From Chara braunii (taxonomy: Eukaryota; Plantae; Charophyceae): a stretch of 44,610 nucleotides of DNA. Shown here piece by piece: positions 341 through 34,657 of the stretch. The notes under the pieces are model-generated. The model was given only the letters and a program-made list of their open reading frames with translations. It was not told where the DNA came from and searched no databases. The position numbers and the translations under genes are program-made. Positions within the stretch are counted from its first letter, which is position 1; each line of letters starts with the position of its first letter. The stretch spans positions 3,352,428 through 3,397,037 of the forward strand of contig BFEA01000007.1 of NCBI GenBank assembly GCA_003427395.1, in the 5' to 3' direction.

Positions 341-848
341 AATTGATTGATTGAATGATTGAATGATTGATTGATTAAATGATTGATTGATTGGTTGATT
401 GATTGGTTTATTGATTCGTTCATTGATTGATTGATTGGTTGATTGCTCGGTAGCACGGCGTACATGTACGCAGGTTGCGCGTACACGCGTACACGTACTC
501 CCGTACGTGGGAATACGTAAAAAAAAACTCTATACAAACAACTTTTGCCTGGGATTCATCCCCGAATTCCCAACCAAACTCGAGTAAGAAATTATAAACT
601 AAATTTTGTTTTTTCATTTGTTAAGGGTTTTGATTTTTAAATTGAGCTTGGTTTGGAATTCGGGTATGACTCTCAGGCAAATGTTGTTTGTATCATTATT
701 TTGCACAAAATACTATTTTTTCAAATTTTTTGGAGGTTTTTTTTTATGTTTTTTTTTTTCGTACGTGTACCCAGGATTTTTGGTTTGTACGCGTACGCTG
801 GAATACGTATGCGTACGCACTGCGTACGCTTACAGGGTGCTACCCAGG

Positions 849-900
<52 letters not shown>
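281..900. repeat. (TGAT)n microsatellite, interrupted by the element at 446-847
   Basis: Direct reading: imperfect GATT/TGAT tetramers at 281-445 and 848-900. Confidence 0.95.
446..847. mobile_element. Complete MITE-like DNA transposon, GTACG-motif type, 8-bp TSD
   Basis: TIRs CTCGGTAGCAC / GTGCTACCCAG (10 of 11 match). Flanking duplication GTTGATTG at 438-445 and 848-855. GTACG/CGTAC arrays at both ends. Shared core present twice, in inverted orientation (~532-585 and ~641-693). Confidence 0.85.
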
Positions 901-901
<1 letters not shown>

Positions 902-913
902 ATGAGGTGGGGG

Positions 914-1186
914 NNNNNNNNNNNNNNNNNNNNNNNNNNNNNNNNNNNNNNNNNNNNNNNNNNNNNNNNNNNNNNNNNNNNNNNNNNNNNNNNNNNNNNN
1001 NNNNNNNNNNNNNNNNNNNNNNNNNNNNNNNNNNNNNNNNNNNNNNNNNNNNNNNNNNNNNNNNNNNNNNNNNNNNNNNNNNNNNNNNNNNNNNNNNNNN
1101 NNNNNNNNNNNNNNNNNNNNNNNNNNNNNNNNNNNNNNNNNNNNNNNNNNNNNNNNNNNNNNNNNNNNNNNNNNNNNNNNNNNNNN
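914..1186. other. Assembly gap (N run)
   Basis: Run of n between (TGAT)n/G-run units. Confidence 1.
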
Positions 1187-1187
1187 T

Positions 1188-1222
<35 letters not shown>

Positions 1223-1380
1223 ATGAGGGGGGGGGGGTGGCGCCTCCCCCCCGCGATTACACACACACACACACACACACACAGAGAAATGGGCGCGGCC
1301 TTATTTTTTTTATTTTTTTTTTTCCTTTTGATTGATTGATTGATTGATTGATGTGAGGGGGGGGGTCGCCTTCGGCTCTG
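1187..1380. repeat. Compound microsatellite unit (TGAT)n - G-run - (CA)n
   Basis: gattgat(a/g)tgag-G-run recurs at ~895, ~1215 and ~1345. (CA)n at 1259-1283. The same architecture appears reversed at 33810-34408. Confidence 0.8.
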
Positions 1381-1389
1381 AAGCGAGTG

Positions 1390-2595
1390 ATAGATGTCAG
1401 AGGCTTCTTGGGAGCCTGTGGATTTTGGAGGATTTTTATTCCTTATTTTGCTACCCTTGCAAAGCCCATAAGAGAAATAGTGAGATAAGGGACTGACCTG
1501 TCCTGGACTGAGAAGAGATAAATTTTTGTTAAAGCTTTACAAGAAAAACTAAAAAATGGGGATGTAGTGTTGGGGGTGCCCTTCTATGACGATGAAGAGA
1601 GAAGACCCTTCATGGAGGACCAGTAACTCTCGGTGGTGTACTTGTTCAGAAATATGAGAATAAGAAAAAGAGACCTTTAAGATTTGAGAGCATAACCCTT
1701 AACTCTACAGAGAGAGGCTACACATGGTTTATAAAAGAGTTACAGACAATCATTCACCGCCTCAGGTGCTTCAGGCACTATATACTTGGAAAGAGATTCA
1801 TTCTGAGGACATATGCATCTACTGTGATATGTGCTATTAAAAAACATTAACAAGTAGATGCATATGTCTTTTAATAACACATATGTAAGATGAAGATGTC
1901 CTCATATGCATCTACTGTGATATGTGTTATTCAAGTGGATAGTGACAGATGGCCTAAGCCGAATTGAATGGAGAAAAGATGAAGATGAAGATATTAATGG
2001 GACGATTGAATAATTTGTCTATGTTGATAACTTCCTGAATGAGGAGGACGATGAAGATTATAAGGCTCCAAGTTCCTATAATGGAGCTCATGGCCTGAAC
2101 AAAGGGACGGTTGGGGAGAAATCCCCGATGCTTATGTCTATGAATTAATTCTTGAAAAGGACGAGGAGGAAAAATAAAACGATTGATATGCTAAAGTCAA
2201 TGCCGCATATGTGGTTGCTCATGAACTGGGAGAGAGTTCCGGTTCAAAGAATGAAGAAGAGATTGAGAAGAGAGAAGAAGAGATATAATTCATCTTTGAA
2301 TAATATGATGGGAGTTACCAAAAGATTGGAAAGAAGATGGAAAGAAAACAACTAAAGGAATATTACTGCGAAAACTCAAGCAAGATGTTCAAACTAAAAA
2401 GAGGACATCTCCTCATGGATGGCAAGGGAGGCTTACCTCCACTAAGAGTTGTTTGTGAGAAAGAAAGACAGTTAGAAATAATTATTGCTCTGCATGAAGG
2501 GGGTGTTGGTGACCATAGAGTTGCTGAGGCAACCTACTCTAACACAGTTAAACTCTACTTCTGGCCTGATATGAGAGACATGACTTTAGTGGTTA
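1390..2595 (+). mobile_element. Ty3/Gypsy pol fragment (RNase H end and integrase N-terminal zinc-binding region), decayed
   Basis: Translated remnants ELQTIIHRLRCFRHYILGKRFILRT (RNase H) and IIIALHEGGVGDHRVAEATYSNTVKLYFWPDM (integrase H-H motif). Many stops. Confidence 0.8.
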
Positions 2596-4139
2596 TCCAG
2601 TCTCACGCCAGTGCCGCCCAGTAAGCACTGCAACGCTGTGCTAATTCTTCAACCAGCGTTGTAAAAAGTCCGTGCGCCGGCGCACCCGGAGTCCACCAAG
2701 TTTCATGTCATTCGAAAACATTCGAACACGCAACCATGCTCGCAAACACGCACGCACCTTCCCGTTTCGAAATCAAGGTTGTTGCCGGAAAGGGAGTGAA
2801 GAGTAAGAGTATGGACAACCACGTCACGCCATACATTTGGGTGTGACCATCCCCAAACTTGGACAAAAACAGAAAGAGGGGAGAAGAGGAGGAGAAAACG
2901 AAGGGGAAGGAACACTACGGGGAATGAAAAGATGGGAAAAAGAGTAGTGCGCAACAACGAAAAATTAAAAGGAAAAAATAAGAGACACGAGGAAACAGGG
3001 AAGGTCGAGTGATTACCTTTCCAAACGAGGAGAAGGGTCTACGGTGGAAAAGACAAGCTAAACACTCACCGTCCTTCGGGGAGCAAGTGACACAACGATC
3101 GAGTGTACCATCATTCAACTAGTAAGGTTCGAACAACCCATATCAAAGACAAAGGCAAGATCTCGCTGACCAATCTACATTTAACCACTCAAAGCGTAAG
3201 CGATAGGACCAGCGCAAGGGCAAATGCACATGAGAGGAGTGGCGACGTCTTCCCAAGGGAACAAACGACAACAAGTTTGACCCAGCCATCATCACAAGCC
3301 TTTGAGTAAAACTCGAAGAGGAACAATTAAACACAAATAGTTACAGTCTACGACACTCTCGACACACATTGTTCACAGTACAGACAACGATCCTCGTTAT
3401 GAATAGCGTCTAACAGGAGAGACAGAAAGTAGCGACATCGCGACAAAGAGTAGGCATGTAGAATCGGAACAGCCAACCACGTTCCCCACACCGCCTGGCC
3501 CCCCCCAAGCAATATGTTTCTCATACCCACAAAACACTAACCTCCGACACCGACAACCCACCTGCTCCACCATTCAGTCCACCAGCCTCGCTCACATATT
3601 ACTACCCACCTCCCCTCCATCCCTCCCCACCCCGACTCCCATCACAACCTCTTCATTTCTAATACCCCTCCTCACAACCGTCTACCCCCCTGCCCTCGCC
3701 CCTCATTTCTCCACTCTCCCTCTCCCCACCCCGACTCCTCACTCCGACCTCCTATCTATACGTACCATCCTGTCCTCCCTCCTGCCCTTACAACCACCCG
3801 TCCTTTACTCAATACCCTGCCTCCCCCCTCACCTCTAACCTACGCATCCTTTACTCACCAAGCCCCCCCACCATTCCTGCCCATAGCTTGCAAATTTCAA
3901 ACCATTACCCGCCCAACCCTCCTTATACAAACATTTCCACTTTCTCCACACCCATCCACCCTCTGTCGCATCATATCTGACCCCCTATGTCATCATCCCA
4001 CAACCCACCATTCCCCCATTACAATTAAACAAAAAATATATATTATTATTATTATCATAATTATTATTATTATTATCACCATTACGACTTTGTCGGATTA
4101 CAATTAAACAAAATATGTATTATTATTATTATTACGGGC

Positions 4140-6640
4140 AGATACTCAACCTCATGATAAAGGAAACACATGTCAAACATGCTATCATCAAGAAAGTATT
4201 GAAAATCATCAAGGAAGAGGAAACAAAAGTTGGATTTTATGTGTATCTAAAGGAGCACCTGCCCGTGTTAGAGGAATTCTATGAAAAACATAGTAGTCTG
4301 CTCCTGCCCAGCAAAATGGAAATAATTGTTGCACACAGAGAAAAAAGAAGAGGGTCCGCAAAGTTCTTCAAAACATGGAGAACCTACGGACTTTTAACCA
4401 AAAATTGCCTTACTACAAAGAGGGCAAAACACAATCATCGTTTTATGTGTTGAACCAGATTAGGCAGCTTACCTTCTATTAGTACAGACGCTCTACTGCG
4501 AAGATTCGGTGGTCGCAGTCTCTAAATGGAGGCCCAACAGCCTACAGGGCAGCAGCACAGGGCACCTCGAGACACCAGCAAACACTGATGTACAAGCACT
4601 TCTTGATTCAGTTTGACAACCTAACTAATGAGGTACATCAGTTGGTATAGGATAGGTTGAAAGAAACTTACCCTCGATACTCTCTCTTTGAAGCGCTCCC
4701 TTCAGCCTCATGCTTAGCATCAACTTAAGAATAACATGCATCGAACTCAAAAAAAAAAAACCACCTAAACTACCCGACAAATGGTTTTTCATAGCAGATC
4801 AAAAGGTTACAACAATATACATCTTCATGAAGATGAACCCCATGTGTTTCAGATGCAGGATCAAGGGACACATGGGAAACGGCCCTCTCCACCCCATGAA
4901 CACGAGAAAAGTGGAAGGCAGAAGGTTGCATCCCTCAATGTTGATCGAAGCAGATGCGACGAAAGACATTTGGATCATCAACGACCCTGCCTACGCGGGC
5001 TGGGTTTTTGACGACCTAAAAGACAACCCAACGTGAATATGAATACTAGCGGACCCAAAACCAGCATGTAAACCCGATGTTTTTCCTACTCATGGAAGCA
5101 AACGGCAAAAAGGAGGAGAAAAGAGGAGCGACAAATCCACGCACAAATACGAAAATGTCGCTCTGAGCAACGTCACTCACCTGGAACAGACAATGCATAA
5201 AAATCAGATTCTCAGTGATGAACATAATATAGGACGTGAGGCAGAAAAGTCATACCTCGAGATCTTCCAGGCCAGAAGTGAGTTGGAGCTAAGGAACACA
5301 AACAGCGGCAAGAAGAGTGAGTCCCGAGACCCCAAAGAAACAGGTAAATCACCAGACGTCAAAAAATGCAAAGATGACAACACGTCATTAGAAATCAGGG
5401 AAAATGAAATGCACCTGGACATAGCACCACCTGCAAAAACAACAAAAACCAGCCAGGATACAACTTCCGAGGAGGACTCAGATAACACCCTAGATGGTTG
5501 GATGAATACATTGAATTGCTGAAGGCACGCAGAGAACTAGACATGGAAATCAGGCTGGCACATGCTAGGCGCATCAGCATCCTAAAGAAAGAGTCAAACA
5601 CAAGCAGCACAGACGGATTAATAACCACTCCCAATCGCTTTGCTGCACTATCAATAGAGAACACCTTCTCTGAATTTTTGGCCCTGCAATACGTTAACCA
5701 ACACCATGATGCATTGGACAAAAATGTCAACTTAAACACAATCCCGCAATCATGCCAGCAACCAATTGAGTGGTCTTGCTTATACCTGCACGATGACACA
5801 AACAAATTGGCCTCAAGAGAGGATGAACCATCAAAGGTCAGCAATCTCGAGCACGAAAGAACAGAGGAAGGAAAAATGATTCCTCTGACAAATAGCCTGC
5901 TTAAGCAAGAAAACAACCTAACAAAGGGAAACAGAAGGCGGATCGCCATCCTTGAAAGACAAACAAGATACATACAGGAACAAAACTTGGATCTAGGGGG
6001 AGTGTTGCACTCCCTCAACAAATTGTGAACCAAAACCTCCCTAGAGCTGATAGTGACATCAACCCTCGACGCTCGCACCTTTTCCGCCATGATCCCAATC
6101 TTGCCTTTCCTCTATAACTCATATAAAAAGCAATGACAAATTATAGTCCGTCTAGGATGACTCAGACGTGGATATTTCACAAGGGAAAACATCTAAGAGG
6201 ATCGCCCACTGGCCATAAAAGCGATAGAATAGAACATCCTAGACGTGTACTAGGATGACGAGAACGAAGAAAAGCATTACATCGACTTGAGAGCATTCGT
6301 GGTCCTACACGACCAGCAGGCCCAATTGGGGGAGGCACTTACATGGAAATCATGGGAGCTGATCAAAGATTCCCTACCCCCTACTAGGCCAAAACGATGA
6401 AGTCCATAGAATCGCCTTCAGCACAACGACCTTCATGAGGGAGGAATGGTTGAGAAAGGATGAGGAGGAGACCATAGAGAAGCTGAAGAGGGACAAAGAG
6501 AAGAAAGAATATAAGAGGAAAGAAAGGGAGGAGAAAAGAAAACCTTCCATCTCACCACTTGAGCCAAACATTAGTCCCACACGAGGAATAATCATCCCAA
6601 ACACCAATGGCATAACACTCAAACAACCAACCTGGTAGTG
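4140..6640 (+). pseudogene. LINE ORF1 remnant (degenerate CCHC knuckle, coiled-coil/charged segments)
   Basis: ORF pieces 4115-4453, 4710-5036 (CFRCRIKGHMGNG, knuckle-like), 5193-5522, 5498-6028 and 6435-6638 lie on the same strand directly upstream of the endonuclease. Confidence 0.6.
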
Positions 6641-6719
6641 GAACATGCAATAAACCAAAAAGATTCAAACCCACCACCGAAGCAGATATTCTCAACGAAA
6701 TAACAAAACAACCTTAAAT

Positions 6720-9700
6720 AATTTGCGAGTCATGAAACATTAACGGACTGACCTTAATTTTAGACAACCCAATCAAATGAAGGAACCTTACTGAAATCAT
6801 TGGTTGTTGTAGACCCAACCCCCAGACATAACACACCTCCAAGAAACACACCTTACCAACTGCAACGAAAACACAAAATTACAGATAATCCTAACCAAGA
6901 AGCTAACCTTCGTCAAATGCCTTATGGGCCAAAGCTGCAAAAAATGGCTCCGCGGGAATTGCCATCCCCCTCCACAAAAAATCCGCAGTCAGAGAAGCAA
7001 TAAAAGTTATGAATGACAATCAAGACAATACATCAGGCAAATGGATCCAATTAAATATCAAATTCAAAGAAGAAGAGATGATCATCGTAAGGATTTACAG
7101 CCTGAACACACCACAAGAAAAAAACTCGTTTCTACTCACGATAGAACAACGTATCCCCACACACGCACCCACAATCATCATGGGAGATTGAAACTCCGTT
7201 CAGAACCCAAACCTAGATAAAATATCACACTATCAAGATTTCACACCTCAATCTAAAAGCGTAGACCTAAACGATTTTATAACCAGAAAAAACCTAATAG
7301 ACTCATTTCGTCTCCTATTCCCCCGAGAATAAAAGATACTCCTGCATCTGAAACACCTCAATGGTCTGAACATCCTTCTCCAGAATCAACTTCTTCCTCA
7401 CATCAGACTCATTATTAGGGTCGTCAAGACTGCACCGTTCACAACAACCCATACTACAAGGGATTGGACTACCCAGCCATATCCCTCTCCTTCAGACTCA
7501 CTAAGGAGGGTCATACAGGCAAAAACTTCTACTACTTCAACAATGTCCTCCTCACCAGCCAATCAATGTAATCCGAACTCCAAACACTATTAACCTGACA
7601 AGCACAACTGCAACCTAATGAGGACATATACCATTAACTTCCCTCAAATAATCAAGAACATTAGCACACAGACAACACAAGCCTACAAAAGACTGGCAAC
7701 ACAAAGAAAAGAAAGAGAGAAGACCCAAAAAAACACGATAAAAATTGCAGAGTTGCACCTATAGAAACAACCAAACTCAAAATTTTATGTAGACCTACTC
7801 GATAAATCCAAGGAAAATTTAGTTGAATGGACTAAACTAAAGCTCAACAGCCTCCAACTAGATGTCAGCGTAAAAGACAGGTGATAACACTCCTAAACAA
7901 AAAGGGAAACAGAGATGACATAACAACCTACAAACCTATCTCACTACAAAAAATACACTCTTATACAAAAAGGGAAACAGAGATGACATGAAAACCTACA
8001 GACATATCTCACTACTGAAAGTAAAATACAGAATCCTAGTCAAACTCCGAGCTACCATAATAAACCGGATTATAGGAGGATGCTTCCACCTGGACCAGAC
8101 AGGGTTCATTCCAAGAAGACTCATATTAGATAACGTAATGTCTCTCTGCGAATCCACATGGATAATTGGCCAAAAATGAATCGCAATGGTCATCCTCTTC
8201 TTCGATTTCGAAAAAAAATACGACCAAGTTAACTGAGATTTCCTTCAGGCCAGCATGAAAAAAATGGGAGTAGGCCCGATCCTCCAAAAATGAGTGGGAA
8301 TACTCTACAATGACGCACAAGGGATAATTCAGGTCAATGGCTTCCTCTCGAACCCCTACCCAATGACAAGGTCAATAAGACAAGGGGACCCCCTAGCAGC
8401 ACCGATCTTCCTTTTCGCCATGGAGACCATGACCGCCTTCCTAAGAAATGAGATATTTGTCGAGAGGATCAAGAACATCAAGGATGAACGAGGACAACTC
8501 CTCCACATCCCTACCTCTCTCATATTTGTAGACAATCTCACAGTAACTCCTTCTTGCAAGCCCTGACAAGAGCATGCAAGCATTTCAACTAGCCTAAAAA
8601 ATGAAAGTTAACTAGGCAAAAACAATAGGCTTGTGGACTGCGGAAACACCCCCCTCATTGAGATAACTTCCTCAGGATTACAATGGGCAGATCCAGACTC
8701 ACCAATCCACTTCCTAGGCATCAACCTCAATCTCAAACGATGTCACCAAACATCGGTAGCGATACTTTTATCTTCAATGGTTAACAAAATGCACACCTGG
8801 AAAGCCATACACACTTCCCTGTTAGGCAGGGTACTAACGCTCGATATTTCAATCCTGGAAATGATGTGGTATTGCACCTCCATTTGGTTCCCAGATACCG
8901 ACTTCCAAAGCCGATTGAGGAAAAAAATAGCAACATTCCTATGGATAGGTTACCCGCACAAACAACACTTCATCCACAAGGTGGCCTGGTAGATAGTCAC
9001 CAACCCAAAAAGCAAAAGAGGCCTAGGTCTTATAGATCCAACCCATCAAATTCGGGTCTTACAAATCAAATGGGTCAGCCCTCCAGGACAACCTCTACTG
9101 GTCCCCACTAGCCCTCAACCACATCTGAGTACTGACACCATTTATTTCTCCAACCGGCATGACAGGCGTCTACTGGATTTTTAACAAACTTGGTCACTCC
9201 CAACAGGGAAATTGAGACAGCACAACCAAGCACTCCGAGATAACACCAACGACACCCCCTTGACGAATTCCCTTTAGGAACAAATCCTATACAACTGAAA
9301 AAAATCCCAGAAAACAGAAAAGTTCCAAAGAAGAAAGACGACGCCCTCAGATAACCTCTCTTTGGCAATCCACTGATCAAGAACGATAAAGGGGTAAGCC
9401 TCTCACTCGCCACGTCGAAAAACAAATGGGGCCACTGACCAAAAAAGGGAATATGAGAAATCAAACACATATAGGATGATCCAACAAAACCAGAAAAACA
9501 AAAAGAGACCTACGAGATAAACTAAAAGGAGTACATCACCTCCAAACCAACTTAAACCACATCATAGACTGCACACCTCTACAATGGAGAGCCCTACTAA
9601 AATCAAACAAAAAATGGCAATACGAAGAATGAGCTACCACCATTGACACCCCATCAATTCAAGAAGTCCTTTCCTTCAAGAACTACGAACCCCACAACAA

Positions 9701-9980
9701 CAACTGCATCTTATGCGATATATACACCTTGGAGGAACTAGGAAACCCGGTAAGTTATATCAATACGAAAAGCAGAGCAAAAGAAACATTCATAACCAAC
9801 AACCTGAGAAAAATTGGAATTATAGAAGGAGAAAGAAAAAGAGGTCACAAACCCCACACTAACGTTTGTAACCTAGAGATCGATCCAACGGAATGGACAT
9901 GGAACACCTTCTCTCGCCCCACCCCCATCCCAAGCCTATGCAAGTTAATTGACTACACACCCAAACTAGGATATTGACTT
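6720..9980 (+). pseudogene. LINE ORF2 remnant (APE endonuclease + reverse transcriptase)
   Basis: EN: S*NINGL (~6730) and IIMGD*N (~7176). RT: YRHISLL, LDQTGFIPRRLILDNV, FFDFEKKYDQV, SIRQGDPLAAPIF, LIFVDNL (mutated YADD-type motif) and FLGIN. Numerous stops and frameshifts. Confidence 0.9.
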
Positions 9981-12016
9981 TTCACCAAACCCATATCAAT
10001 AATAAGTGGACAAAGGAGGAAACGCAACTAGCCAACACCCACTTCAAACCTCCGTAGGCCGCAATCTTCTCCACAAGATCAGTTAAGCTAGTCTACAAGT
10101 CCCCTAACCTACACACAGTTACTATCAAACCAACCACATATCACTAATCCATAACCAGTCCAGTAGATACCCCTCCCCCTGCTCTACAAACCCNCNCCCN
10201 CCCCCCCCCCCCCNNNCCCCNAAGCGATCGTCCACACACCACCAGGCATACTTACCAACCATCGTTCCTCCCCGCTACGTCCATTTTACACTACCCAATA
10301 ACCTAAGTCCATACAAAACCCCCAACCCACCCACCTCCCTAAACTTATCATCTACCCTACGAAGAAAGCCTTCACCAAATTACAAGTTAACCCCTCGCCA
10401 CCATCAAGCGATACTTAGAGTTCAGACGAGCACTGATAACCACTTTACGTGAAATCAGCAGGCACAGTATAGAAACTACCTCCAGGGTCAGTGTACACAG
10501 AAAGAGGCATCAAGGGGGGGCTTAGGGTTTAAGCATCAAACACATTTACCAAGTCGAGTTGAAATCAAGTCCGTTGAAAAAAACAACGGCTCTAGACTAG
10601 AAGTAAATAAAATAGCATTCAAGTACAACAACATGACAAAACAGGCTACCTTAGTCAGGGTGAAGAATGGTACATCCTTCCGTGGGGAAGCAACTAATGT
10701 CATTTTTCAGGCCTCCACGCCGAAAAGAGGAGAAGCGTGTGTGAGTATCTTTTGTAATTCTTCTGACTTCCCGCATGAATAGGAACCGGATTGACACTCC
10801 CCAATAACTTAATGCGAAGCAGCAACGCCTCTTCGGATCGCCTAGGGAAAAGTGACGGTGGTGGTACCACTGTAATTTAATGCGAAGCGGCAGGGCCTCT
10901 TCGGATCGCATGCGGTTAATTTTTTGTCTGTTTTCTACTGTTTGAGTGTTTTTTCCTTGCTGTTTTTTCATTAATTTTTTCCTACAAAATAGAAATTATG
11001 AACGTGGGAAGAAGCAGTTGAGTAGTAGTTAATTCTCAAGCAACATACCTTATGGAGTGCAGGAAGCACTTTTCGAACTAAGTAGTACAAGGGCAAAAGG
11101 GTTGAAATCGTTGTTGTTCTTTTACAACGATGATGTACTTCATGATGATGGTACTATGATAATAAAGCCCTCATTATCATGATTATTGAGTTCAAATTGT
11201 ACATACAACCGGATCGATCGAACTTGCACCAACTTGTGAACGATTGGATAGTGCCGCTAGTTCATCTCTCATGCTCTCCTGTATTTTCAAGGCAGAGAGA
11301 GAGAAGAGGACAACAAACGAGGGGCTGTGATATATATATTCAACTCATATATTATACTTATCTTTCTTCTCGTTTCCATTTCTTGAGACTGTTACTCTTG
11401 AGCTGCTTGATCACGTGATCGACCTCGACGGGTGCATACGTGGGAGTTAATTTGACATCAGGACCGACTGCATTGGCGTGTTTTTGGTCGTTGTGTATGT
11501 TGGCCATGAACAGCGCGACAGTACGACATCGGTGCACACGTTTCGGCCGATGCGACTTTTCAGACCGACAGTTCGCTTGAGTCGGAACTAATCGAATTTA
11601 CACGACCGTGAGGCACAGGTTACCCTTCTTCTTGGTTGACAGCAAGCCTGTTCCGGTGATTTGAAGTAAGACGCGCCGAGGAGAGAGGGAGGGTTAACAA
11701 ATTTTGGTCCACTTATCTCTGAGGTAGAACAAATTATGTTCTGATGACTGTGCTTCCAGCTTGGATAGATGATGCCATCTTTTTTAGAGTAGTTGTAGGA
11801 TCACAGTTGATTGGGGGCTGTTGATTCTTAGGGACGGATACCCCGCCGAAGGAGCTATGTTGATGTGATTGGTAAGAGGTGAGTCAGTTGCCTTGTGCAA
11901 GGCCACGCATGGGAAGGCTCTATTTGAGTCACTAATCATTACGGGCTATTGACTTACTGTGTTGTAAGGCTGTTGCTAAGCCTTTCCTGACTTATCGTCT
12001 CTGGTTTCCAGTTCTA

Positions 12017-12500
12017 TTGAGAGTTTCAACACCTACTGGTTATCCATCAAACTCGAATGCTCTGAATCATCCCCCTCCTCCTCCTCCCCCTCCCCCCCCT
12101 ATGTATCCACCATACCAACCATACCCCACATTTGAACAGCCTTACTGGGCCCCGATACCCCCGCCCCAGCAAGGGCAATTCGGTGGAAGTTACAGGAAAG
12201 GTTACGGGAATGGATACGGGAATGGATTCGGGAATAATTTCAGGAATGGGTATGGTTACAACAACAACAACAATTGGCGAAGTCGCAACCCAAATCAAGC
12301 CTTCTTCACGAAAGACCAGGCCAAATTCCTTGAGAAACTTAAGTTTAAGCAAGCGGTGCAGGAACTAGTAAAGCAGCAAACGGAAACCAAGTCAGCCCTG
12401 ACACAGCCTATCGAACCAAAGATAAAGATAGTAGAAATTAGGAAGAAGAAGACGGACGATAAAGAGGATGAGATGAAGAAATGGGTGACAAATACTCTAA
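12017..12500 (+). other. Open low-complexity ORF segment (poly-Pro, GNGY/N-rich, then charged helix), probably TE-derived gag/ORF1-like
   Basis: Uninterrupted frame 12017-12556 in the ORF track. It abuts Gypsy RT with no recognisable protease in between. Confidence 0.4.
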
Positions 12501-12539
12501 AGTTCTGTTTTTTCAAAGAAAAAACTACATGGGTCAGTG

Positions 12540-15190
12540 GAGGAGGGGTGGATTAAACCATACCGTAATTTCGTCGTCATACGGTACATCGGTCTTGTCC
12601 GTTCCCAAAAGAAAAGGTGAGTTCAGGATGTGCATTAACTGTCATGGACTAAACGACATAAGCATTAAAAATATCGAGCCACTAGCGTGCGTAGATGACA
12701 TGTAATACCAATCGGATAAATTGTAGGGTTACAAAGATAGATTTGAAGTAGGGGTATCATCAAATAGAGGTGTGGCCTGAAGATTAGTATAAGACGGTGT
12801 TTCAAACATGATACAAATACTACGAGTTTGTAGTTTCGCCGTTTGGACTGACAAATGTCCTTGCCATGTTTCGCGAATGCATGAATGACTTATTTCGAGA
12901 CTGGTAACATCGTTTTGTAGTTGTATATATTGATGATATTTTAATTTTTGGTAAGTCTCTTGAGGAGAACTGGGAATGTTTACATTTAACATAGAGTAAA
13001 TCGAGGGAAGTTCAATTTAGATCGAGCCTGAAGAAGTGTGGATGGGTTACGCGCCTAGTATTATATCTAGGATATGTGGTAGACGAAGATGGAGTTAGAG
13101 ATGAGGATGTCAAAAGAGCAACGATTCGAGACTCATCGACAACGAGCACGTTAGCTGGGTTGCGGGCGTTTTTAAAATTGGCCAATTACTATTGGAAGTT
13201 TGTTAGAAACTTTACCAATACCGCTGTCTCATTAGATAAGTTATTGAAAAAAACAACCGTTTGGCTATGGAATAAGGACTGCACCTCTGCATTTACGAAG
13301 TTAGAAGAAGTGTTTAATAAAGTATATTGTCATATAAATAGTACACTCATTCTTGTCGTTCGACTACATACACGAGTCAATTTGGCATAGGTGCAATACT
13401 GCAACAATTTGATAGGTATGGTTACCGGCCGATAAAGTTAATGTCTAGACGGATACCTTACTGAACAGTAGTTGCATCGACATATGAGAGATAACCGTCC
13501 ACGTTCAGAAAAACTCTAGCTCACTAGTGACGTAATCTGTTAGGAAGACACTTCACGGCCTACTTAGGTAATGAGACCCTGCGCTGATTAAAGATACAGG
13601 CACGAATGTCGACTAAGTTGGTTAGATGGGCGGCTGAAATAGACGAGTTTGACTTCGACTTGAAGCCAGTGAAAGGTAAGTACAATGAAGTTGTTAATGC
13701 GTTGAGTAGGGGAATCGATTTCTCTAATAATATCATCACCTAACTCGATGCCAAAAGATAATTACCACAAAAGATCAAAGATGCATACCCGATTGATCCC
13801 TACCTTCGTAAGATTATAGCTAAGGTAGTAGATACTCCCCACGAGTTCTCAAAATATAGGATAAATGACGATCATCAAAAATATGATAGTGAATGTAAAC
13901 TTAATGTCCTAAGCTACAAATAAGTTCGTAGTATCATTCTATGTGAATGTCATGACGCAGGAACACAGAGGGACGATTCTGATGGAGGAGGACGATAATC
14001 TGTTGCAGTTGTACGTCTGGATTGGAATGAAAAACAATTGTATCATATTTGTTTAAAGTTGTAAAAACCGTAAGAGGGCAAAACGTTTCACGGTGCCACC
14101 ACTAGAACCATTGAAATCTTTACTTATTCTGTCATATGACCTGGAGACTCCATCTCATTGACTTCATTGGCACAATAGTCAAGAGTAGAAACAGTAAAAG
14201 TCAAGTGATGATTATAGTTGGTAGATTTAGTAAATTTGTTGTTGTAGTTCTGCTGTCGCCCCAAGCTGGGATAGAGTTAGTGATTCGGGAGCTCTCGAAC
14301 AAGTGGGTGACGAACAAGGGTCATCCTTTGACTACAGTTGGCAATAGAGATGTTAGACTTATGGGTGAGCAAAGAGAACAATTAATGAAGTTGTATGAGT
14401 CAAAATTAACCATCCGGTAGACACCCGAAAACGAGTGGCCATACTACGAAAATAAATAAGTTATTATACCAAGTACTTTGTATGTATATCATACTTAACC
14501 AAATAGATTGGGACGAATACCTACCGAAGGTAGCCAGCGCGTTTCATAACTCTATATATTTGGCCACTTCATGTACCCCGAATGAACTGCACAAAAGTTT
14601 ATGTTCAAGGAGACCAATCGACTGCATAAATTCTTATCAAATTTAAAGATTACCGTCAGGCACTAGGAATTCATCTTGCAATACAAGAAGGATCTGCAAA
14701 AGTAGAAGAAAACATTCTGAAGGCTCAACATTAAATTGTAGAACAAGCAAACAAGCATTTTAGTTCGTTGTGAAGGATTTTATGCGGGTAAAGTCAAAAA
14801 TAAATTGTCAGAAGAACAATTTTTTTATAAAGTGTAACCTGCATAAAAAGGACAATAATAAATCGTAGACGTGATAGGAGATCCATATTGTCCATCATAT
14901 ACCGTAGATATCCCATCGCATCTACATACTTCCTCGATATTTCATGTTCCTAAATTACTGCCTTGTGTAAGCAACAATCCATTTCCCTCACGCTGATCAA
15001 TGATACCTCCTTATATAGATGGGGGACAAAATATCAATCGTATTGTTGATGAAGATGTGTATAAGTCCGCCAGGAGGGGAAAGTTACAACAACATCATAA
15101 GGTTCGGTTCCTACATCATGAACCAAAGGACGACCAATGGTACACGAAGAATGAGCTAAAAGAAACTGCTCTTAACATCGGGTCGTAACA
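12540..15190 (+). mobile_element. Chromoviral Ty3/Gypsy pol (RT-RNaseH-integrase-chromodomain), decayed
   Basis: SSSYGTSVLSVPKRKGEFRMCIN, FGLTN, VVVYIDDILIF, LRAFLKLANYYWKFVRNF, integrase IDFIG...MIIVGRFSKFV, and chromodomain-like INRIVDE...HKVRFLHHEPKDDQW. Confidence 0.9.
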
Positions 15191-15295
15191 TGAGAGAGTT
15201 AGTTGGGGAGTCAACAGTGTAGATAGGTATACAAGTTTGATATTTCTCGGATGACCTTGAAATTAGAGCGATGAGAGTGAAAGGATTTCACATTG

Positions 15296-16431
15296 TGTCA
15301 TGGTCCCGAGTTCCGGTCCCACAGTCCCAGTTGGTTCCAATCCCATATAGTGGCAAGCTTAGCAACCGAGTATGGTTAGCAAGATTGATTCTGTAATGCA
15401 GAATCCTTGTCGATGCAGAGTCCTTTAGGTCCAGTAGGATCCGATAGTTAAAGCATCATCGATCGTTAGCAGTCAGACCCGGTACCCGATAAAAAAGGTA
15501 CAAGGTCCCGAAGTTAAATTTTGCAGCAATAGTTTGAGAAAGTTTGGTAAGTTGCAGAAGTGTCAATTGCAATTAACAGGTCAAGGGGCCTTGTCCTGAG
15601 ACGATAGAAGACATCAACCGAAGTTGCTATTTCTACATATTACAATGTCGCCGACTTCACTTGTCAATTTATACACTGCGGAAGCTTTGCTGTAGCACTT
15701 GTGCGACTAGAGGCGGGTTAGACAATACACGGTGATGAAGGAGAAGGGGAACGACGCCATGGTTAGGGTTGTCGGGGAATAAGACAACGGCGTAGTTGTT
15801 AATTAGGAGAGGGATAGTTGTTAATGCTCTTAGAGAGCAAATGTGAGTAGTCCAAAGATTGTACGCGAAAGAGGAAGAATGTGTATGAGTCAGTAATGTT
15901 GAGCGATTGTAGTGGGGAGAGGGAGATTGCAAGCGAGTAAGGTTGAGCAATTGAAGTAAGGAGAAGAAAAGTTCAAGCGAGTAAGGTTAAGTGATTGTAG
16001 TACGAGGGAGAGAGCGAGACATCTAATGAGAGAGAAGAAGGAGCATGTTAGAGATATGGAGAGAAAGGGAGTGCAATTAATTGAACATTATTGTTTGGGT
16101 TGCGGCTAAAGCCGCACTTTGAAACTTAATCCTTGTATAATGGTCAATGTTTTGAAGTGTTCTCCTCTCGATGTGAGCTAATTTGTCCTCTCGATATTTC
16201 AGTGAAGGTTCTATGAGTTTTCGACGTACTGCGGGTTTCAATTGGGAGTTGAATTCAGGCTAGTTTCTTGGACGTTTTCATTTCGGCCAAGAATTTAGTT
16301 CCAATAGGTCGTGCCCTAAAAGTCGTGGTTCAAACACACGTCGAAGAAAAATGGTTGGGAAAGGTATTGGTGGACCATGGTGGTAAAAGTCACTTTGAAC
16401 TTCATCTCTAGCTTTGGTGGTCTCCGTCACA
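15296..16431 (+). mobile_element. LTR-like sequence (3' LTR of the upstream Gypsy, or an independent solo LTR)
   Basis: Starts TGTCATGG and ends CCGTCACA, the same terminus as the LTR at 44368 (- strand). Follows the chromodomain. No matching TSD or partner LTR seen. Confidence 0.5.
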
Positions 16432-16799
16432 CTAGTGGTTTAAAAGTCATTAAAAAGTGCATCTATTGTTTGGGTGGTCTCCCTTGTCCTGTGACTTTTG
16501 CCCAGGCATAATCTTGTGCTCCTTCATTCCAATGACGTCAACTTAACTTCCACTTATTGTTGGGGGCAACATCAATCTGAGGGAAGTATTGACTGCTATT
16601 TATGGCGGTCATTGCAAGTTCATATATATGGCGGTACATCAAGAATGTTAGAGGGGTCATCAGAAGCGTTCCTATGATTTCTAAGATAGTTCAAGACTCA
16701 AAATACTACGGAGTAAGTTTTTGTGATATATCTTGTTATAGCGTGAACTCATATGCTCTAACCCAAGCCTTACCACCCACCTAGAACATAAACACGTGT

Positions 16800-19700
16800 G
16801 TATGTTGATTCTCTTAGTTTGTGCCCTTTATGGTTTTTGTAGCTGATAGACAGTCCGCTCCATCATTTTTTGTACTTCAAGGCACGTTTCCTTGTTCAAG
16901 TCACTAGCTTAAGTTTTGGGTTTGAAAGCAAGAAATCTAAGAGAATCCTTGGTTTCCATCCCAAATGTAGTTGATTAGGTGATCACCCAATGGTTGTGTA
17001 TAATATTGTTATACAGTCGAGCTAGTGAGGCATTTTGACATCCCAATCAATCTCATTGGGAGAAGAGTTTTTTACTTATTTACTCAACTTGTCGAAGAGT
17101 TTCAAGATTTCTGGAAGTCATCATAAGTTTTGAACTTAGTTTTTTAGCCAGATTTTGTTAATATGTGGCGTATTCGGTCATGAAACGAACCTCTTTATCA
17201 CTTACTAAAGTTTTAAGTAATCTACAATCTTTGATATGGTGCTTAGCAAAACTAGTAATTACAAACTTAATCTCAGCGATAACCGGTAAAGCTATCAAGA
17301 TTGCAAATTTAACGAATTTATCTATAATCAACAAAATTTGTGTATTCCACTTTCTTGTGTTAATCAACATGAATACGAAGTTCATAGCAAATTGATTAAC
17401 ATGGTCCATCGGGTATGGGACGTGGCTTTATTAAGCCTAGAGGGACCTATGCTTTAGGTTTGTTCATTTGACAAACATGACAAATATCAACCTACATTTT
17501 AGCATCTCTCTTCATGTTTGGTCATCAACATCGTTATAACAAGTTAGCATAAGTCGTTTTCAATCAAAAGACTCACTCCATCATAGCATTCTTGTAGAAA
17601 TAGGTTCCTAAAAGATTCTTTATTAGAGAGAAAAACTCAGAGAATTTGTTTGTACCCCATCCTTACTCTAAAACAACAACCCCTCAAGGATAATGTAGTA
17701 TTTTTTCATCTTTCTATCTTTGTGCATTTGTACGATTGATAATCTCACTGACAATGTTTCCATTCTCCTATGACTCTTTCACTTGTAGACGTATGTGGTG
17801 CCCTATAAAAATCTCGATCACAAGTGCACATATAAATTTTACTCAACATGATAAGACATCAGCAACCACATTATACTGCTCTTTCACATGCTTAGCGCGA
17901 AGTCAAACATATCAATAAATTAGAATTATTGCTTAAGCGGATCAGACAACATGGGATGAGTTTTAATTCATTGAAGGGTCTTATTGTCAGATCCAACTTC
18001 AAAATGTTTGTCATAAACATAGTGCTTTCGTGTTTGAAACCATGAAAGAACACAAAGTTTCCGCGCGAGTTTCTTAGATGACATTTTTTTTTACATGTAT
18101 TTGATTGTTGTCAAACTCTTACCCTCTTCTTATTGTAGCATTGAGTCTATCGCATGCCAGTTTGCCGCTTTAGTAGTCACAATGAGAGACTTATCTGGGT
18201 CTGCAATCTTAAGAACCAACTGATTGATTAAGATATGCTTCAATTAAATTAAGGTTTTTCCCTATGCATTATCCTAGTCCTAGCAGGTAACCAGTCGAGT
18301 GACATCTATCAAAGGCAGGCAATAGTGTTGTAATTCTCTACAAACGATTTATATGATTAGTCTATTATACCAAAGAAAGATTTGGTCTCAATTACTTTGC
18401 GGGTTGTGGCCAGCCCCCACTAGGTATAACTTTTGCATCCTCCGGCCTCAACCCTTGTGCAAAGATATCATAACCCATTTATGAGACCTTAGTGAGTGCA
18501 AACCCACTCTTCTCTTTGTTGATCTTATATTGAAGTGGTTGAAGGAGATTAAAAATTATCTTCAGTTTTTTCGCACGCTCCTACAAAATTTAATTGAAGA
18601 TAAGTATATATCATCGAGATTGATAGCGATAAACGTATTTAAGTAATCAATAAAGATCATATTCATAACATGTTTGAATGCATACAAAGCCCCCCCAAAT
18701 GACATCCCCACAAACTCATACAGACCATATTTGATATGAAATGTAGTCTTGTGTTAATCATCGGGTCATAACTATATGTGGTGGTATTGAAGTACTCATA
18801 TCCATACACCTTATCCAAGAGGCTATCAATGTGAGGTAGGGGCCAAATATTACGTATAGTGATAACATTGAGCTCCTTATAGTTGATGTACATTTTCAGT
18901 GTCCCTCTCTTATTGGGTATGAATAAAACAAAAGAACTCTCTTATTGGGTATGAATAAAACAAGAGACCAAGATGGTTAGGTACTAAATCTAATCAAGGC
19001 ATTGTTAGTCAGTTCATGGAGTTGTTTTCCAAACTTATATAACCTTGTAGGAGACATCTTATACACCTTGCCTTTTTATGATGTCACCGTTTGGGATAAT
19101 CTCTATGGCATGGACTATCTCCCTGTCGACCTTAGTAGGTTCCTCAAACAAGTCAAATGTTTGATGATTTTTTTTACCTTCTGGAGAGTTTTTATGACTT
19201 GTACTTTTTTAGAGATAAATATTAATTACATACCTTTTTCCATATCCTTTTTGTAGTACTTCATGAAATCTGCAACATATACACAGTCGTAGGATTTATC
19301 TTTTCCTCTAGTAGATTATTTCTTGATCCATACGGTCCGACCGCCCAAAATATGTTAGAGCAGGGTTTTCAAAATCTTACTCAAAGTGAACTTTAACTAC
19401 ATCTAGATAATACATACATAAAATCATATCGAATGGCAGATCATGGCCAACCAGAAAAGACAATTTATGTCTAATATTATCTTCTAATCCTTATGGACAC
19501 AATGACATTCCTTAGCTTTGCCTCTAGACTACAGGTTGTGCTGCTAAGAGATACGAGGTCACTATATGAGGTGCTGCCCTCACTAGCCAACAAATTTGTA
19601 ATATTCTCCGAAGTGCACGAAGATAATTCCGTAGGAGTATCTTAAGGTCATATTTGACCCCTACGAGCTTGATGAAAACCTTTATTGTTTCACTACTTGA

Positions 19701-20700
19701 ACATTTTTTTACTTGCAAGTTTCTAGCACATGAAACTTGTGTGTAAACCGTTTTGCAGTTGTTTAATGGTATATTTTTTTTTCTTCTAGTCTCACAAAAT
19801 CATGGAGGACTTTCTTATTGGGCGAAATCTCAAAATCTTTCCCAGAGTCGTTTGTTGCAACAACTTCATTCAGGAATACTACTGCGGAGTTTTTCAGGAA
19901 TGTTTAACCTACCATACCTTATCCTTCATCCTAACATATAATGAGACCACCTTTAACCAGATATTTAAGTTTTCTCCATTTTTATCCTTACTAAGGGTCG
20001 AACTTCTCCAAAGTGTTTTTGGCAAATGAGGAGTACAGTAATGGTACCGGCCTTGTAGTGCATGATATAAGTGGTGACCTAAAAATGACCAAGACTATAA
20101 CTGAATTTTTTTTCGATATTTACACCACATCTTGTAGTGCAGCAGGAGCAATTATGCCAATTAGGTGAGGCGTGTCATACTAAAACTGACATGTTGTTGT
20201 TGGTGGTGGTACCAGTGGATCTATACTGTGTATCACCAATGATGGCGTAGTAGAGGAGACAAGTGACTTATGTGTGGCCACTGTTTTTTTCGGATATAAA
20301 TGTTTTAGTTACGAGTTTTTCAACTTAGTGTGGATTGACCCAGTTTGGTTTAAAGCCTAAAATAACAGTGGCCTTATTTCATTGTAGTGGTCCCATTGTA
20401 CGGGTGAGGTAACATATTAGTGCATTTACATGTGATTTTTTTATGACACAGTTATTATTGGTTGTTGATGTTCTGTCTTTTCCCTTATCAAATGTCACAT
20501 TAACTCCTATATTTACTTTATAGTCATACAGGGCGATCGATGTCTCTTTGTTATTCATAAACCTACGTTTCATGACCATCCCCATTCTACTCCGTCAAAT
20601 TTTAGCTACTTAATGTCCTTAGCGAGCTCAAAAATCACTCATTTGTCTTGTGTCTCCCTATCTTTTCTTAGTGTTTGTTTTTTCTGTGTTCTTAAGGCTA
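16800..20700 (-). mobile_element. Very old Ty3/Gypsy remnant (gag region-RT-RNaseH-integrase)
   Basis: Minus-strand MYINYKELNVITIRNIWPLPHIDSLLDKV (RT, 18663-18893) and QILLIIDKFVKFAILIAL...LVSDKEVRFMTE (integrase core, 17158-17409). Heavily mutated; boundaries approximate. Confidence 0.8.
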
Positions 20701-22042
20701 AGATCGTTTTAAGTCTTCTACTGTCAAAATCTAGGGTTGTAAGACTTTTTTTTTTTTTTTTTTTTTTCATTAAAAAAAATATATGTTAAGTAATTCAGAA
20801 CCAGTAAATTTTGTCACGCATACGGTTGTGTTTTCATGTTAAAGAAATAAAAGAGTGAATGAAAACTCATCTTACTATTTTTGTAAGGCCTTATTCCTAG
20901 GTAAATTATTTTCTTGACTTTCTTCATTATGGTAGAGGTATGCTCTCAAATGTTTCCTTTATATTTTAAATCATAAAATTTTTATTGTGGCTCCCTTGGA
21001 GAAAAAACTACATCACATTTTATTTTGTTGTGGGTCTATGAAACGAAGTAGGAAATTCTCTTTGCAACTCAACATTCTTCAGTATAAATAATATCGTAAC
21101 TCTAGTGAAAAAATAAGATATCTTACGCCGATGACGATTATGATGATGAAGATCACAATACTGGTTCCTTAATTGTTGTGTTAAACCTATTATGGTGGAT
21201 TGAAAAAAATGATGATGATGATGATGATAGCAATAATGATGACTATTCATTTATGATGCATTTTTCCTCCCCCAACCCCCCTTCTCACCCCACTCCACCC
21301 CAACCAGATTTTGCTAAGCACTTAAAAGGCATAAAAAAACCAGCATTCGGGTAGAGCTTGGTGAAGGTAGAGATGTCCCTCCACTTATAAGTAAAACAGA
21401 AAAGGAACAATAAACTATTTTTTTTGCAGATCAGGAGTACCTCAAGCGGTTAGACAATTAGGTAAGTGTTTGAAGTAACATAGGTTAAACAAATATTTCT
21501 AACTAAATATGCAAATTTGCAAAAACATAATTTAATTATTCTTCTATTGTTTTATACTCAGTTTATTGTGAACTTACGACCTTTTACCAACCTGCTCTGT
21601 ATATACAAGACGCAAATTGTCGGCAATGTAAAAAAACACTTTTAAATCATTTACTAAGACGCAACGATTAAAAAAACGTTGTTCAACTACATGTATTTGT
21701 ACAACACAAGAATGCATTCTTACTCTCAAAACCATTTCGTGAAGTTTGAATATTGTTTTTATTTTTTTTCAACCCCAAACAAAAATGGTTAATGCTCCTA
21801 CGTCCACTACAGTTGCTATGTATCATTTGGTATACTGCAATGAATGTAGAAACATTTCTCAATCTAATACTTCATGGATGCTATATATTATTTGATCATT
21901 GAGTTTCTCGTGGATGTTTGGTTTATGTAACAATTTTCTTGCTGATGCACATAGTTTGCATGGTATGACAATGAGAACATTTTCATTCTTCTTTGTCTAG
22001 TTGAATGTTCTGATGCAGAGACAATTTTTTATGTGTTGCTAC

Positions 22043-22482
22043 CTACGTAGCACCATGTTCACGTTCGGAGGCAAATGCGAACATAAAAAATATTTAAAAA
22101 ATAAAAATAAAAAAGTTCTCAAAAAAATATGAAAAACATATATGTTATGTAAACTAACAATACAAGCAACTTTTGCCATGGAGTGATATTCAATCTCGTA
22201 GCCAATCATGAGTTAAAAATAAAACCCCAAAATATTTTTTTTTTCCTTTTATTGGGNNNNNNNNNNNNNNNNNNNNNNNNNNNNNNNNNNNNNNNNNNNN
22301 NNNNNNNNNNNNNNNNNNATGAGTTAAAAATAAAACCCCAAAATATTTTTTTTTTTTTTTTTTTTTTTTTACGAAAAAACAAATTATGTTCGCCTGAACA
22401 TGTTCGCAAACTGTTCGCGCGAATGCGCGAGCACGTTCGCCCAAACGTGAAGGGGCGTGAACACGTTCACGGTGGTACGGAG
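22043..22482. mobile_element. Complete MITE-like DNA transposon, GTTCG-motif type, 8-bp TSD
   Basis: TIRs CTACGTAGCACC / GGTGGTACGGAG (10 of 12 match). TSD GTTGCTAC at 22035-22042 and 22483-22490. GTTCG/CGAAC arrays, with GTTCA/TGAAC variants. Shared core at ~22112-22228. Contains gap 22257-22318. Confidence 0.85.
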
Positions 22483-22835
22483 GTTGCTACATAGTATCTT
22501 ATGTATTAATACCATATATGAACATATAAAACAAATTAAGTATGACACAAAACATCATTGAAAAAAACCATTAAATCAAAGAACACCGCATGTGCGGCGT
22601 TGTTTATCACAGTATGTAAAAAACACATCCTAAGTAATATCCATACATAATAGGTTATGCTTTTGGGTGGAAATGATGTTTACTTGTGGTGCAAAACACC
22701 ATGTCACAACATATTTTTTCATTTTTTTTTTCAACCTTCAAGAATTTAAACCTTTGGTTCAAGTAACTCATTTGATGTCATGAAACTCATGTCATAAATG
22801 TTTGCTTCCTTCTGTTATTAATCTATCTTACTTAC

Positions 22836-22963
22836 ATCAAGGATTTCAGTGGGGGCGAGATGTCCAACCGAATTTTTGTCATTCTGGTGCACATCACTCC
22901 AAATTGATGGCATTCCCTCAGGAACACGAACATAGTCATCAATGGTAATTGGGTATGTATCAT
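22836..22963 (-). other. Candidate exon or decayed coding fragment (DTYPITIDDYVRVPEGMPSIWSDVHQNDKNSVGHLAPTEILD)
   Basis: On the minus strand, ...ttattgac...cgcAG acceptor, 128 nt open in one frame, then GTAAGT donor. More GC-rich than its flanks. No homologue recognised. Confidence 0.3.
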
Positions 22964-23374
22964 CTGCGATGATAGCAACGGTCAATAAACAATAAGCCTT
23001 GTTTTAATATACCTAGTATAAAATGACAAAACGAAATCAAGTGACAAATAAAATATTCATCCAAATATGGAGGATTACAAGGAAAGAAACTTTAAAAATG
23101 TATCACAAAGATAAAAGTAATTTATGCATATTTGATATATTACACATATACATAAAAGTGTTGATATATATATATATTTTTTCTTCGATTCTTAATCATT
23201 TTTATAATTTGTAAACATAATTTTTCAATGCATGGTGGTTTTGGTAATCTTCTCTTTAACATTGACAATGTTTACTTTTGACGAATGTTCTCCTTGTCAC
23301 TGCTTGATAAACGAAACAGGTGTTAATATCATCAAGGTCAAAATTGAACGGTGATCTCAAAATTCACTTATTTG

Positions 23375-23475
23375 CTAGGTTGTTGGATCGGAAGTCCGGG
23401 ACCCCACTGACCGTCCGGGATGTCCGACCGGACGTCTGGTCCGACGTCCGACCGGACAGGGGTTGTCCGACCTAG

Positions 23476-23506
<31 letters not shown>

Positions 23507-23735
23507 CTCATAAAAATATGAAAAACATATATGTTCTGTGACATAACAATACAACCAACTTTTGCCTTGGAGTCATGTTCAAATTCGCAGTCAATCATGA
23601 GTTCGAAAACCGAAAACAAAATATATATTTTTTTTTACGAAAAAAAAAACTTTTTTTCCCGGACGACAGGGGTACCGGACGTATGGGGGAGACGTCCGGG
23701 GGAGACGACCGGCCCCCGGACCATTGGTAACCTAG
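23375..23735. mobile_element. Complete MITE-like DNA transposon, GTCCG-motif type, 8-bp TSD
   Basis: Termini CTAGGTT... / ...AACCTAG. TSD CTTATTTG at 23367-23374 and 23736-23743. About a dozen GTCCG/CGGAC motifs. Core ~23501-23617 is colinear with 22112-22228. Confidence 0.9.
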
Positions 23736-24102
23736 CTTATTTGTAAAAATTTGAAGTAAGAAAACATAGAAAATAAAACATGAATATAAAATTTTGTTAT
23801 ATCATTGTCCAATCCAACATTCTTTGAATTCGAGAGGAGGAATTTGAAGTGGTGAACATTTGAAATTTAAATACGATAAATTTTGTACCACAAATATTAG
23901 TCAAGCCATGGAAAAAAAACAGTCATAGGCGGGTAAAATATGAGGCAAGAGAGCAATCAATAATTCAATTACCAATTAATCAATCCATTCATCCATTAAC
24001 TAATCTATCAATTCTCCCCAACTTCTCTACCACCCTCCCCACACCTGTCCTCACCACCTTCGCCCCTTTTGCCCCCTCCACTTCCTTTTGTATGTATGCT
24101 GA

Positions 24103-33124: not shown

Positions 33125-33254
33125 ACTACCTCGCCGTCTCCTAATGACAAAGCAATGACAGCCTTCTCATCTCTCTCCTCTCATACCACAACATCTGGTT
33201 GGCGGCCACAAAGCAGCTTGGTGCCAGCGTCCACCTCTCAAGTCTCAAAGGTTC

Positions 33255-33809: not shown

Positions 33810-34657
<848 letters not shown>

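Follow-up and report, generated by a model that had tools for sequence, protein, structure and literature searches.

A clan of short non-autonomous DNA transposons in Chara braunii with shared interiors and family-specific arm words

Inverted-repeat elements in the window

The 44,610-nt stretch of Chara braunii contig BFEA01000007.1 analysed here (positions 3,352,428 to 3,397,037 of the forward strand; hereafter the window) contains four short DNA elements with CT...AG ends, three of them complete (A, B, and C) and one partial (P). All four lie where an earlier note, made from the sequence alone, had placed them. Together with a fifth element, D, from other Chara DNA, they are mobile, make an 8-bp target duplication and have their tips in common. 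The arms behind the tips carry words that are pure to each family, and the interiors are common to families whose arms cannot be aligned. The elements and their target duplications are as follows.

1-243, + strand: element P, partial, cut by the window start; core-like part 1-83, an A-rich run, right arm 154-243; right terminus ...GTGGCAACGTAG, with the right end given as CTACGTTGCCAC
446-847, - strand: element A, 402 bp; arms 446-530 and 750-847
438-445 (left) and 848-855 (right): target duplications of A, GTTGATTG, exact 8 bp
22043-22482, + strand: element B; arms 22043-22085 and 22375-22482, core 22096-22244
22035-22042 (left) and 22483-22490 (right): target duplications of B, GTTGCTAC, exact 8 bp
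23375-23735, + strand: element C, 361 bp; arms 23375-23475 and 23650-23735, core 23485-23635, flanked by an A-run on one side and a T-run on the other
23367-23374 (left) and 23736-23743 (right): target duplications of C, CTTATTTG, exact 8 bp

A and B were recovered when CT...AG ends that have inverted tips and exact 8-bp flanks were searched for mechanically. The two tips match at 10 of 12 positions both in A (CTCGGTAGCACG / CTGGGTAGCACC) and in B (CTACGTAGCACC / CTCCGTACCACC); the ends of C have only CTAGGTT in common, yet its 8-bp duplication is exact. When the boundary of A, B, or C was moved by one base, the duplications were lost. The nine ends available from A, B, C, D, and P all start with CT followed by NNGT and fit a CTNNGT(A/T)RCAC-like tip, of which the CTATGT form is plausibly a CpG-decayed CTACGT. 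The same search pattern is seen in a 6.6-kb CT...AG pair at 2035-8662 with the duplication ATAACTTC, which was set aside as a chance match, being without arms and having its right end in a reverse transcriptase (RT) coding sequence.

Exact 8-bp duplications had been claimed for all three complete elements. Those of B and C stand; that of A is exact as well, but its octamer GTTGATTG occurs several times in the surrounding (GATT)n array, and for this reason it counts as weak evidence. With sizes of 330-402 bp, terminal inverted repeats (TIRs), target duplications, and no coding signal, A, B, and C have the make-up of MITEs (miniature inverted-repeat transposable elements). The length of 440 bp first given for B had to be revised: the 46 bases on each side of the gap 22257-22318 inside this element are 43/46 identical, and from 22319 on the sequence of B runs on exactly as in the corresponding part of C. 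The gap is thus due to overlapping contigs that were not merged, which makes B an uninterrupted element of ~330 bp. A further gap (914-1186), 66 bp outside A and beyond every element, has flanks that are 44/45 identical and is a contig overlap as well; neither gap touches the finding. Duplicated flanks such as those at both N gaps are typical of overlapping contig ends scaffolded with a gap.

The flanks of B and C yielded no paralogous empty sites. We observed that the right duplication of B and the four bases that follow it (22491-22494), read on the - strand, give CTATGTAGCAAC, a perfect clan tip pattern. B may thus have inserted 4 bp within the tip of a relative that is older and has decayed; a matching left end or duplication for the tip at 22483-22494 was searched for and not found.

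A common core between unalignable arms

As had been proposed, A, B, C, and P have a homologous core, and their subterminal regions do not align. In blastn comparisons the cores of B and C are 83% identical over 151 bp (E=4e-41), those of A and C 78% over 97 bp (E=5e-15), those of A and B 73% over 135 bp, and those of P and B 78% over 64 bp (E=7e-10). No blastn match was obtained between arms of different families. Beyond the core, B and C follow the same order of tip, arm, A-run, core, T-run, arm, and tip. Element A holds the core in two inverted copies (532-591 on the + strand and 666-759 on the - strand; 532-693, E=1e-21), which makes it a fold-back derivative and a near-palindrome. This form accounts for the sub-threshold, miRNA-precursor-like Rfam matches of A.

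The core lies within an open - strand frame in both B and C. The 16 differences between the two cores are distributed 4/7/5 by codon position, without third-position bias or other sign of coding constraint, so that a coding function of the core was ruled out. It was likewise rejected as a known RNA (U2 or U6): the core matches no Rfam family, and A alone gives hairpin matches, below every threshold. For comparison we used ten 20-kb loci around annotated Chara RT genes, 207 kb in total. Across these and the window (252 kb) the core was not found outside elements of the clan, an exact-pattern metagenome scan for it returned 0 matches, and the 88-codon open reading frame (ORF) across C, used as a handle in a word-indexed protein search, gave no candidates.

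The four core-bearing elements of the window form two tight pairs, and there are 0 in the 207 kb elsewhere. By our own estimate, the chance that all four fall within the window under uniform density is ~0.001. As every comparison locus was selected for a retroelement gene, the density contrast may reflect the type of region.

Family-specific words in the arms

The arms are saturated, each by its own GT-N-CG word, as the earlier note had it. In counts that take both orientations, with Poisson p values, the arms of A contain 16 GTACG against 0.09 expected (p=4e-31), the right arm of P 10 GTACG, mostly as GTACGA (p=2e-20), the arms of C 12 GTCCG, as GTCCGG or GTCCGA (p=4e-19), and the arms of B 6 GTTCG, as GTTCG(C) (p=3e-8), together with 4 GTTCA. 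The enrichment of the own-family pentamer is 35- to 200-fold; pentamers of the other classes occur 0 or 1 times in the arms of each element. The dominant hexamer is GTACGC in A (11/17), GTTCGC in B, GTCCGC in D, GTCCGG or GTCCGA in C, and GTACGA in P. The variants GTACA (9 copies) and GTTCA (4 copies) resemble products of CpG decay, and C has 0 decayed copies.

Thus, in the five arrayed families GT and CG are constant, and variation is confined to the middle position and the one that follows CG. P and A both use GTACG but differ in the next base, the tip, and the arm sequence, their arms being unalignable; C and D, which both use GTCCG, differ likewise in next base, tip, and arm sequence. A GTGCG family was not seen. 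One GTGCG cluster, in comparison locus L002 (3339-3394), was examined and proved to be plain GC-rich sequence, not an element.

Element D and its empty sites

The ten RT-gene loci contained no further core copies and one new element, D, which was found by a motif-cluster scan.

L008:7654-9118: element D, ~1.5 kb including an estimated gap

D is a larger non-autonomous element rather than a MITE-sized one. Its tips are CTATGTAACACC / CTATGAATCCCC, and its arms carry nine GTCCG, 8/9 of them as GTCCGC, by which it adds to a hexamer series GTACGC / GTTCGC / GTCCGC on one type of terminus. The element interrupts a retroelement, the paralogues of which in L003, L004, L001, and the window run on uninterrupted as ...gctCTCTGACCctgatc... 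These empty sites prove D to be an insertion and fix its duplication at 8 bp. The duplication, CTCTGACC, matches at 7/8 positions, its left copy having since acquired one substitution. The core could not be detected in D, where its alignment score was no better than those of shuffles. Instead, D has an interior hairpin module (L008:7790-7860) ~150 bp from its CTATGT end, which is common to two fragments in the window, F and G.

Fragments F, G, and H

Three further stretches of the window have clan-like ends.

33230-33537, - strand: fragment F, with the clan-type terminus CTATGTATCACC (- strand) at 33537
34500-34657, + strand: fragment H, a GC-rich arm with two GGTCATGAC boxes
38290-38480, + strand: fragment G, starting CTATGTCTCCCGCGTGGTCATGAC, with a hairpin at 38436-38470 as in F and D

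The arm of F holds GGTCATGACC and CCGCGG boxes, and its interior hairpin (33354-33396) is that of D and G. G adjoins a retroelement with an RT ORF at 38568-39056, and H terminates in ...GGGGGATTCATAA, resembling the right end of D. In all three fragments, GGTCATGACC and CCGCGG boxes stand in place of GT-N-CG arrays, which means that the motif variation exceeds one base. Partner ends for F, G, and H were searched for and not found. D, F, and G share a second type of interior and differ in their arms. Each of the two interior types is hence combined with several kinds of arm, and not all members of the clan have the core.

The CTATGT-type ends of F and G (33537 and 38290) point away from each other and are 4.75 kb apart. 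Between them lie H, (GT)n, (CAAT)n, and a 53-bp tandem array that looks proline-rich (37670-38289); this segment is a transposon cluster, either nested or rearranged. A (GATT)n array with a dinucleotide repeat nearby was met three times, at 281-1283 and 33811-34409 of the window and at L008:8100-8330. The last of these lies within D; in the window one array hosts A beside P and another is located between F and H. The combination of (GATT)n and dinucleotide repeat may form a module in the interior of D-type elements.

Proposed mechanism

We propose, at a probability of roughly 60%, that the elements belong to one Chara braunii clan of cut-and-paste DNA transposons, non-coding and non-autonomous, whose arms are putative transposase landing pads. 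The transposase would be supplied in trans. Its N-terminal DNA-binding domain would land on the multi-site arms, each ~60-100 bp per end with a CpG-containing word in both orientations, and the catalytic part of the protein would read the common tip. The use of subterminal repeats by BED domains in hAT transposases could serve as a model for such arms. BED domains of Hermes bind a 4-bp subterminal repeat that is present in both orientations, with 17 copies at the left end and 14 at the right (PMC10368747). N-terminal domains of hAT transposases are diverse in specificity and change it rapidly; most prefer CGG or CGC words that correspond to the subterminal regions of their own elements (PMC8097297), and the hAT-derived ZBED6 binds GCTCGC (PMC2780926).

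The purity of each family's word is most likely due to several related transposase lineages with differing binding preferences, the words being GTACGC, GTACGA, GTTCGC, GTCCGC, GTCCGG/A, and, in relatives, GGTCATGACC. The purity of the words in both arms despite CpG decay suggests that the middle base is read, and hence that several transposase lineages are involved. The earlier note had gone further and suggested paralogous transposases whose specificity differs by a single base. Its picture of related non-autonomous TIR elements with family-specific arm arrays, common termini, and a common interior holds; a one-base switch is too narrow for the variation, as seen from the boxes of F, G, and H and from the P/A and C/D pairs. 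The 83% identity of the B and C cores beside unalignable arms points either to recombination or template switching between arms and interiors or to a much faster turnover of the arms. We regard as quite improbable a bolder version of the scheme, namely that a deep branch of hAT or a new group with CT...AG tips contains sister transposases which re-tuned one base of a GT-N-CGC hexamer, resulting in mutually exclusive mobilisation groups that exchange or retain interior cassettes.

Transposase search and superfamily assignment

Several results weigh against the landing-pad proposal or its link to hAT. Pfam searches of 257 window ORFs of at least 50 amino acids (a set without ORFs inside the elements and those of 50-74 amino acids beyond ~40.4 kb) revealed no transposase of any superfamily, nor did the ten longest ORFs in the flanks at 5 of the 10 other Chara loci yield one; the only domains seen were those of retroelements. 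All nine ends read CTNNGT and depart from the hAT terminal consensus 5'-YARNG, i.e. (C/T)A(G/A)NG. The orientation pattern of the motifs is unlike between B and C. Every family is present as a single copy in the 252 kb, and the five core- or GT-N-CG-type elements found there are too few to exclude mixed-motif copies elsewhere. In the ORFs tested, Pfam showed no BED finger, DDE core, or hAT dimerisation domain either.

As the tips are off the canonical hAT form, in agreement with the earlier note, and no transposase was found, we refrain from assigning the elements to hAT. A hAT-like superfamily is the most likely, with about one chance in two, and by analogy the elements may work like hAT non-autonomous elements. 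The 8-bp duplication that is characteristic of hAT was found exact in B and C, at 7/8 with empty sites in D, and within a microsatellite in A. Subterminal repeats, another hAT trait, are present in both orientations near both ends, at 6-16 copies per element. The Ac group of hAT elements prefers targets of the form nTnnnnAn; the duplications GTTGATTG, GTTGCTAC, CTTATTTG, and CTCTGACC have T at position 2 in 4/4 and A at position 7 in 1/4, a weak indication at n=4.

Other superfamilies were considered from the same features. MITEs of the Stowaway / Tc1-mariner type duplicate a TA target; they are alike in their CT-start tips, but the flanks observed here are 8-bp duplications, not TA. Kyakuja, a relative of Zisupton and Dileera with a 7-bp duplication, CA..TG ends, and no TIRs, was ruled out by the length of the duplication, and Plavaka / CACTA-type elements, with a 2-3-bp duplication and CA..TG or CACTA ends, by both the 8-bp duplications and the CT..AG ends (PMC12730594). 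The 8-bp duplication leaves hAT, Zisupton and Dileera of the KDZ group, which produce duplications of this length, and a few others (PMC12730594).

Alternative explanations

The same mechanism could operate with a parent outside hAT, be it Zisupton/Dileera of KDZ, P, Merlin, Novosib, an 8-bp Mutator-like lineage, or an undescribed one. We consider this a tangible possibility, though one we would not favour. It agrees with CT...AG tips that are not known to match any hAT terminal consensus and with arms long enough to pass for long, degenerate TIRs like those of Mutator or fold-back elements, and Zisupton and Dileera are known to give 8-bp duplications (PMC12730594). On the other hand, hAT is the most frequent superfamily with 8-bp duplications in the plant lineage, the T at position 2 of the four duplications recalls Ac-type hAT (weakly, at n=4), short tips with scattered words in two orientations are the typical hAT layout (PMC10368747), and CpG-containing words suit BED-type domains (PMC8097297, PMC2780926). 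A different view concerns the reading of the arms. One transposase, or a few interchangeable ones, may recognise a degenerate GT-N-CG and ignore the middle base, in which case the purity of the arms would stem from local duplication of a founder unit or from one arm being copied in inverted form. The constancy of GT and CG in all five arrayed families and the likeness of tips between families fit this idea; A is visibly a fold-back with one half copied inverted, and short direct repeats occur within arms, for instance GTCCGACCGGAC, which is found twice in C. We nevertheless judge a degenerate reader unlikely, given that the words are pure in both arms of every element despite decay to GTACA and GTTCA, that no GTGCG family was seen, that the same-tipped F, G, and H have quite different boxes, and that characterised hAT-type domains are specific rather than degenerate (PMC8097297).

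It is also conceivable that the core is a passenger, captured independently or passed between unrelated families by template switching during gap repair, so that the clan would be a set of chimeras. This would explain why the cores of B and C are 83% alike and their arms unalignable, and D joins clan tips and GTCCGC arms to another interior, as found in F and G; with these arrangements, interior and arm types occur in several combinations. Yet B and C agree in their whole layout from tip to tip, related tips are found in all families, and the core did not occur outside such elements in 252 kb, all of which makes a passenger core doubtful. We retain related transposase lineages that land on family-specific arms as the preferred explanation.

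Comparison with known systems and significance

Elements of the fold-back or hairpin type resemble A in its near-palindromic form and inverted core duplicate, whereas B, C, and D do not have this form. In classical FB elements the duplication is 9 bp long. Also comparable are the non-autonomous elements and MITEs of the hAT superfamily (Ds, nDart, Mar, BniHAT), which have an 8-bp duplication, short imperfect TIRs, and no coding capacity, as do the Chara elements. The difference from hAT lies in the tips, CTNNGT...AG in Chara versus (C/T)A(G/A)NG, and in the fact that no hAT transposase is linked to them. Moreover, hAT MITEs usually have common ends and a variable interior; in the Chara families the interior is common and the arms differ.

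The likeness to hAT extends to arms of ~100 bp with a 4-6-bp word in both orientations. In Hermes, STR1-STR2 lie within bp 11-27 (PMC10368747), compared with a first arm word 13-20 bp from the tip in Chara. The CGGBP family and ZBED6, which have hAT-derived BED or Hermes-type domains, recognise the short CpG words CGG, CGC, GCGC, and GCTCGC (PMC8097297, PMC2780926). Close paralogues have different words of this kind, which correspond to the subterminal regions of the hAT parent, and the Chara GT[A/T/C]CGC words are similar in style. CGGBP and ZBED6 are proteins with measured specificities, whereas the Chara elements are known here from the DNA side alone. With Zisupton / Dileera (KDZ) the Chara elements have the 8-bp duplication in common (PMC12730594).

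If the arm words are indeed transposase addresses, the clan would represent a natural experiment in which tips and interiors are near-equal and the words differ at one or two bases. Pairing the families with their transposases would then show which residues determine specificity and how new lineages escape cross-mobilisation, and on the bolder version above the GT-N-CGC series would provide a natural system for the co-evolution of a DNA-binding domain and its multi-copy target. For hAT and its domesticated relatives, subterminal repeats as binding sites and fast change of specificity are already established (PMC10368747, PMC8097297); the gain is accordingly a good example and not a new principle. 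The results also add to the record a group of DNA transposons whose CT...AG ends are unusual, from an alga closely related to land plants; our literature search found no study of Chara MITEs.

Other features of the window and the comparison loci

In keeping with the origin of the window, the best relatives of its RT ORF, at 66-80% identity, are without exception C. braunii proteins from assembly GCA_003427395.1. Between 27100 and 31400 (- strand) the window contains a series of ORFs of 100-180 codons without any Pfam match. Their composition, in which S, P, R, C, and W abound, is unlike that of proteins, and they probably arose by chance in GC-rich non-coding sequence. A full-length U6 snRNA match of 66 bits, above the Rfam threshold, was found at L005:18673-18774 (- strand), in a retroelement-rich locus. 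Clusters of the telomere- or telobox-like motif AACCCTA, in both orientations, are present at 42541-42611 of the window, L001:6144-6222, and L002:4625-4713, and hold the same relative place in three copies of an RT-bearing retroelement. At the edge of the window (44467-44609) a 71-bp unit containing (GGACT)n and the tip-like CTCAGTACCAC occurs in two copies of 100% identity. This tip-like match was rejected as a clan end, being part of a repeat unit and not of an arm, and the 71-bp repeat probably belongs to the neighbouring retroelement.

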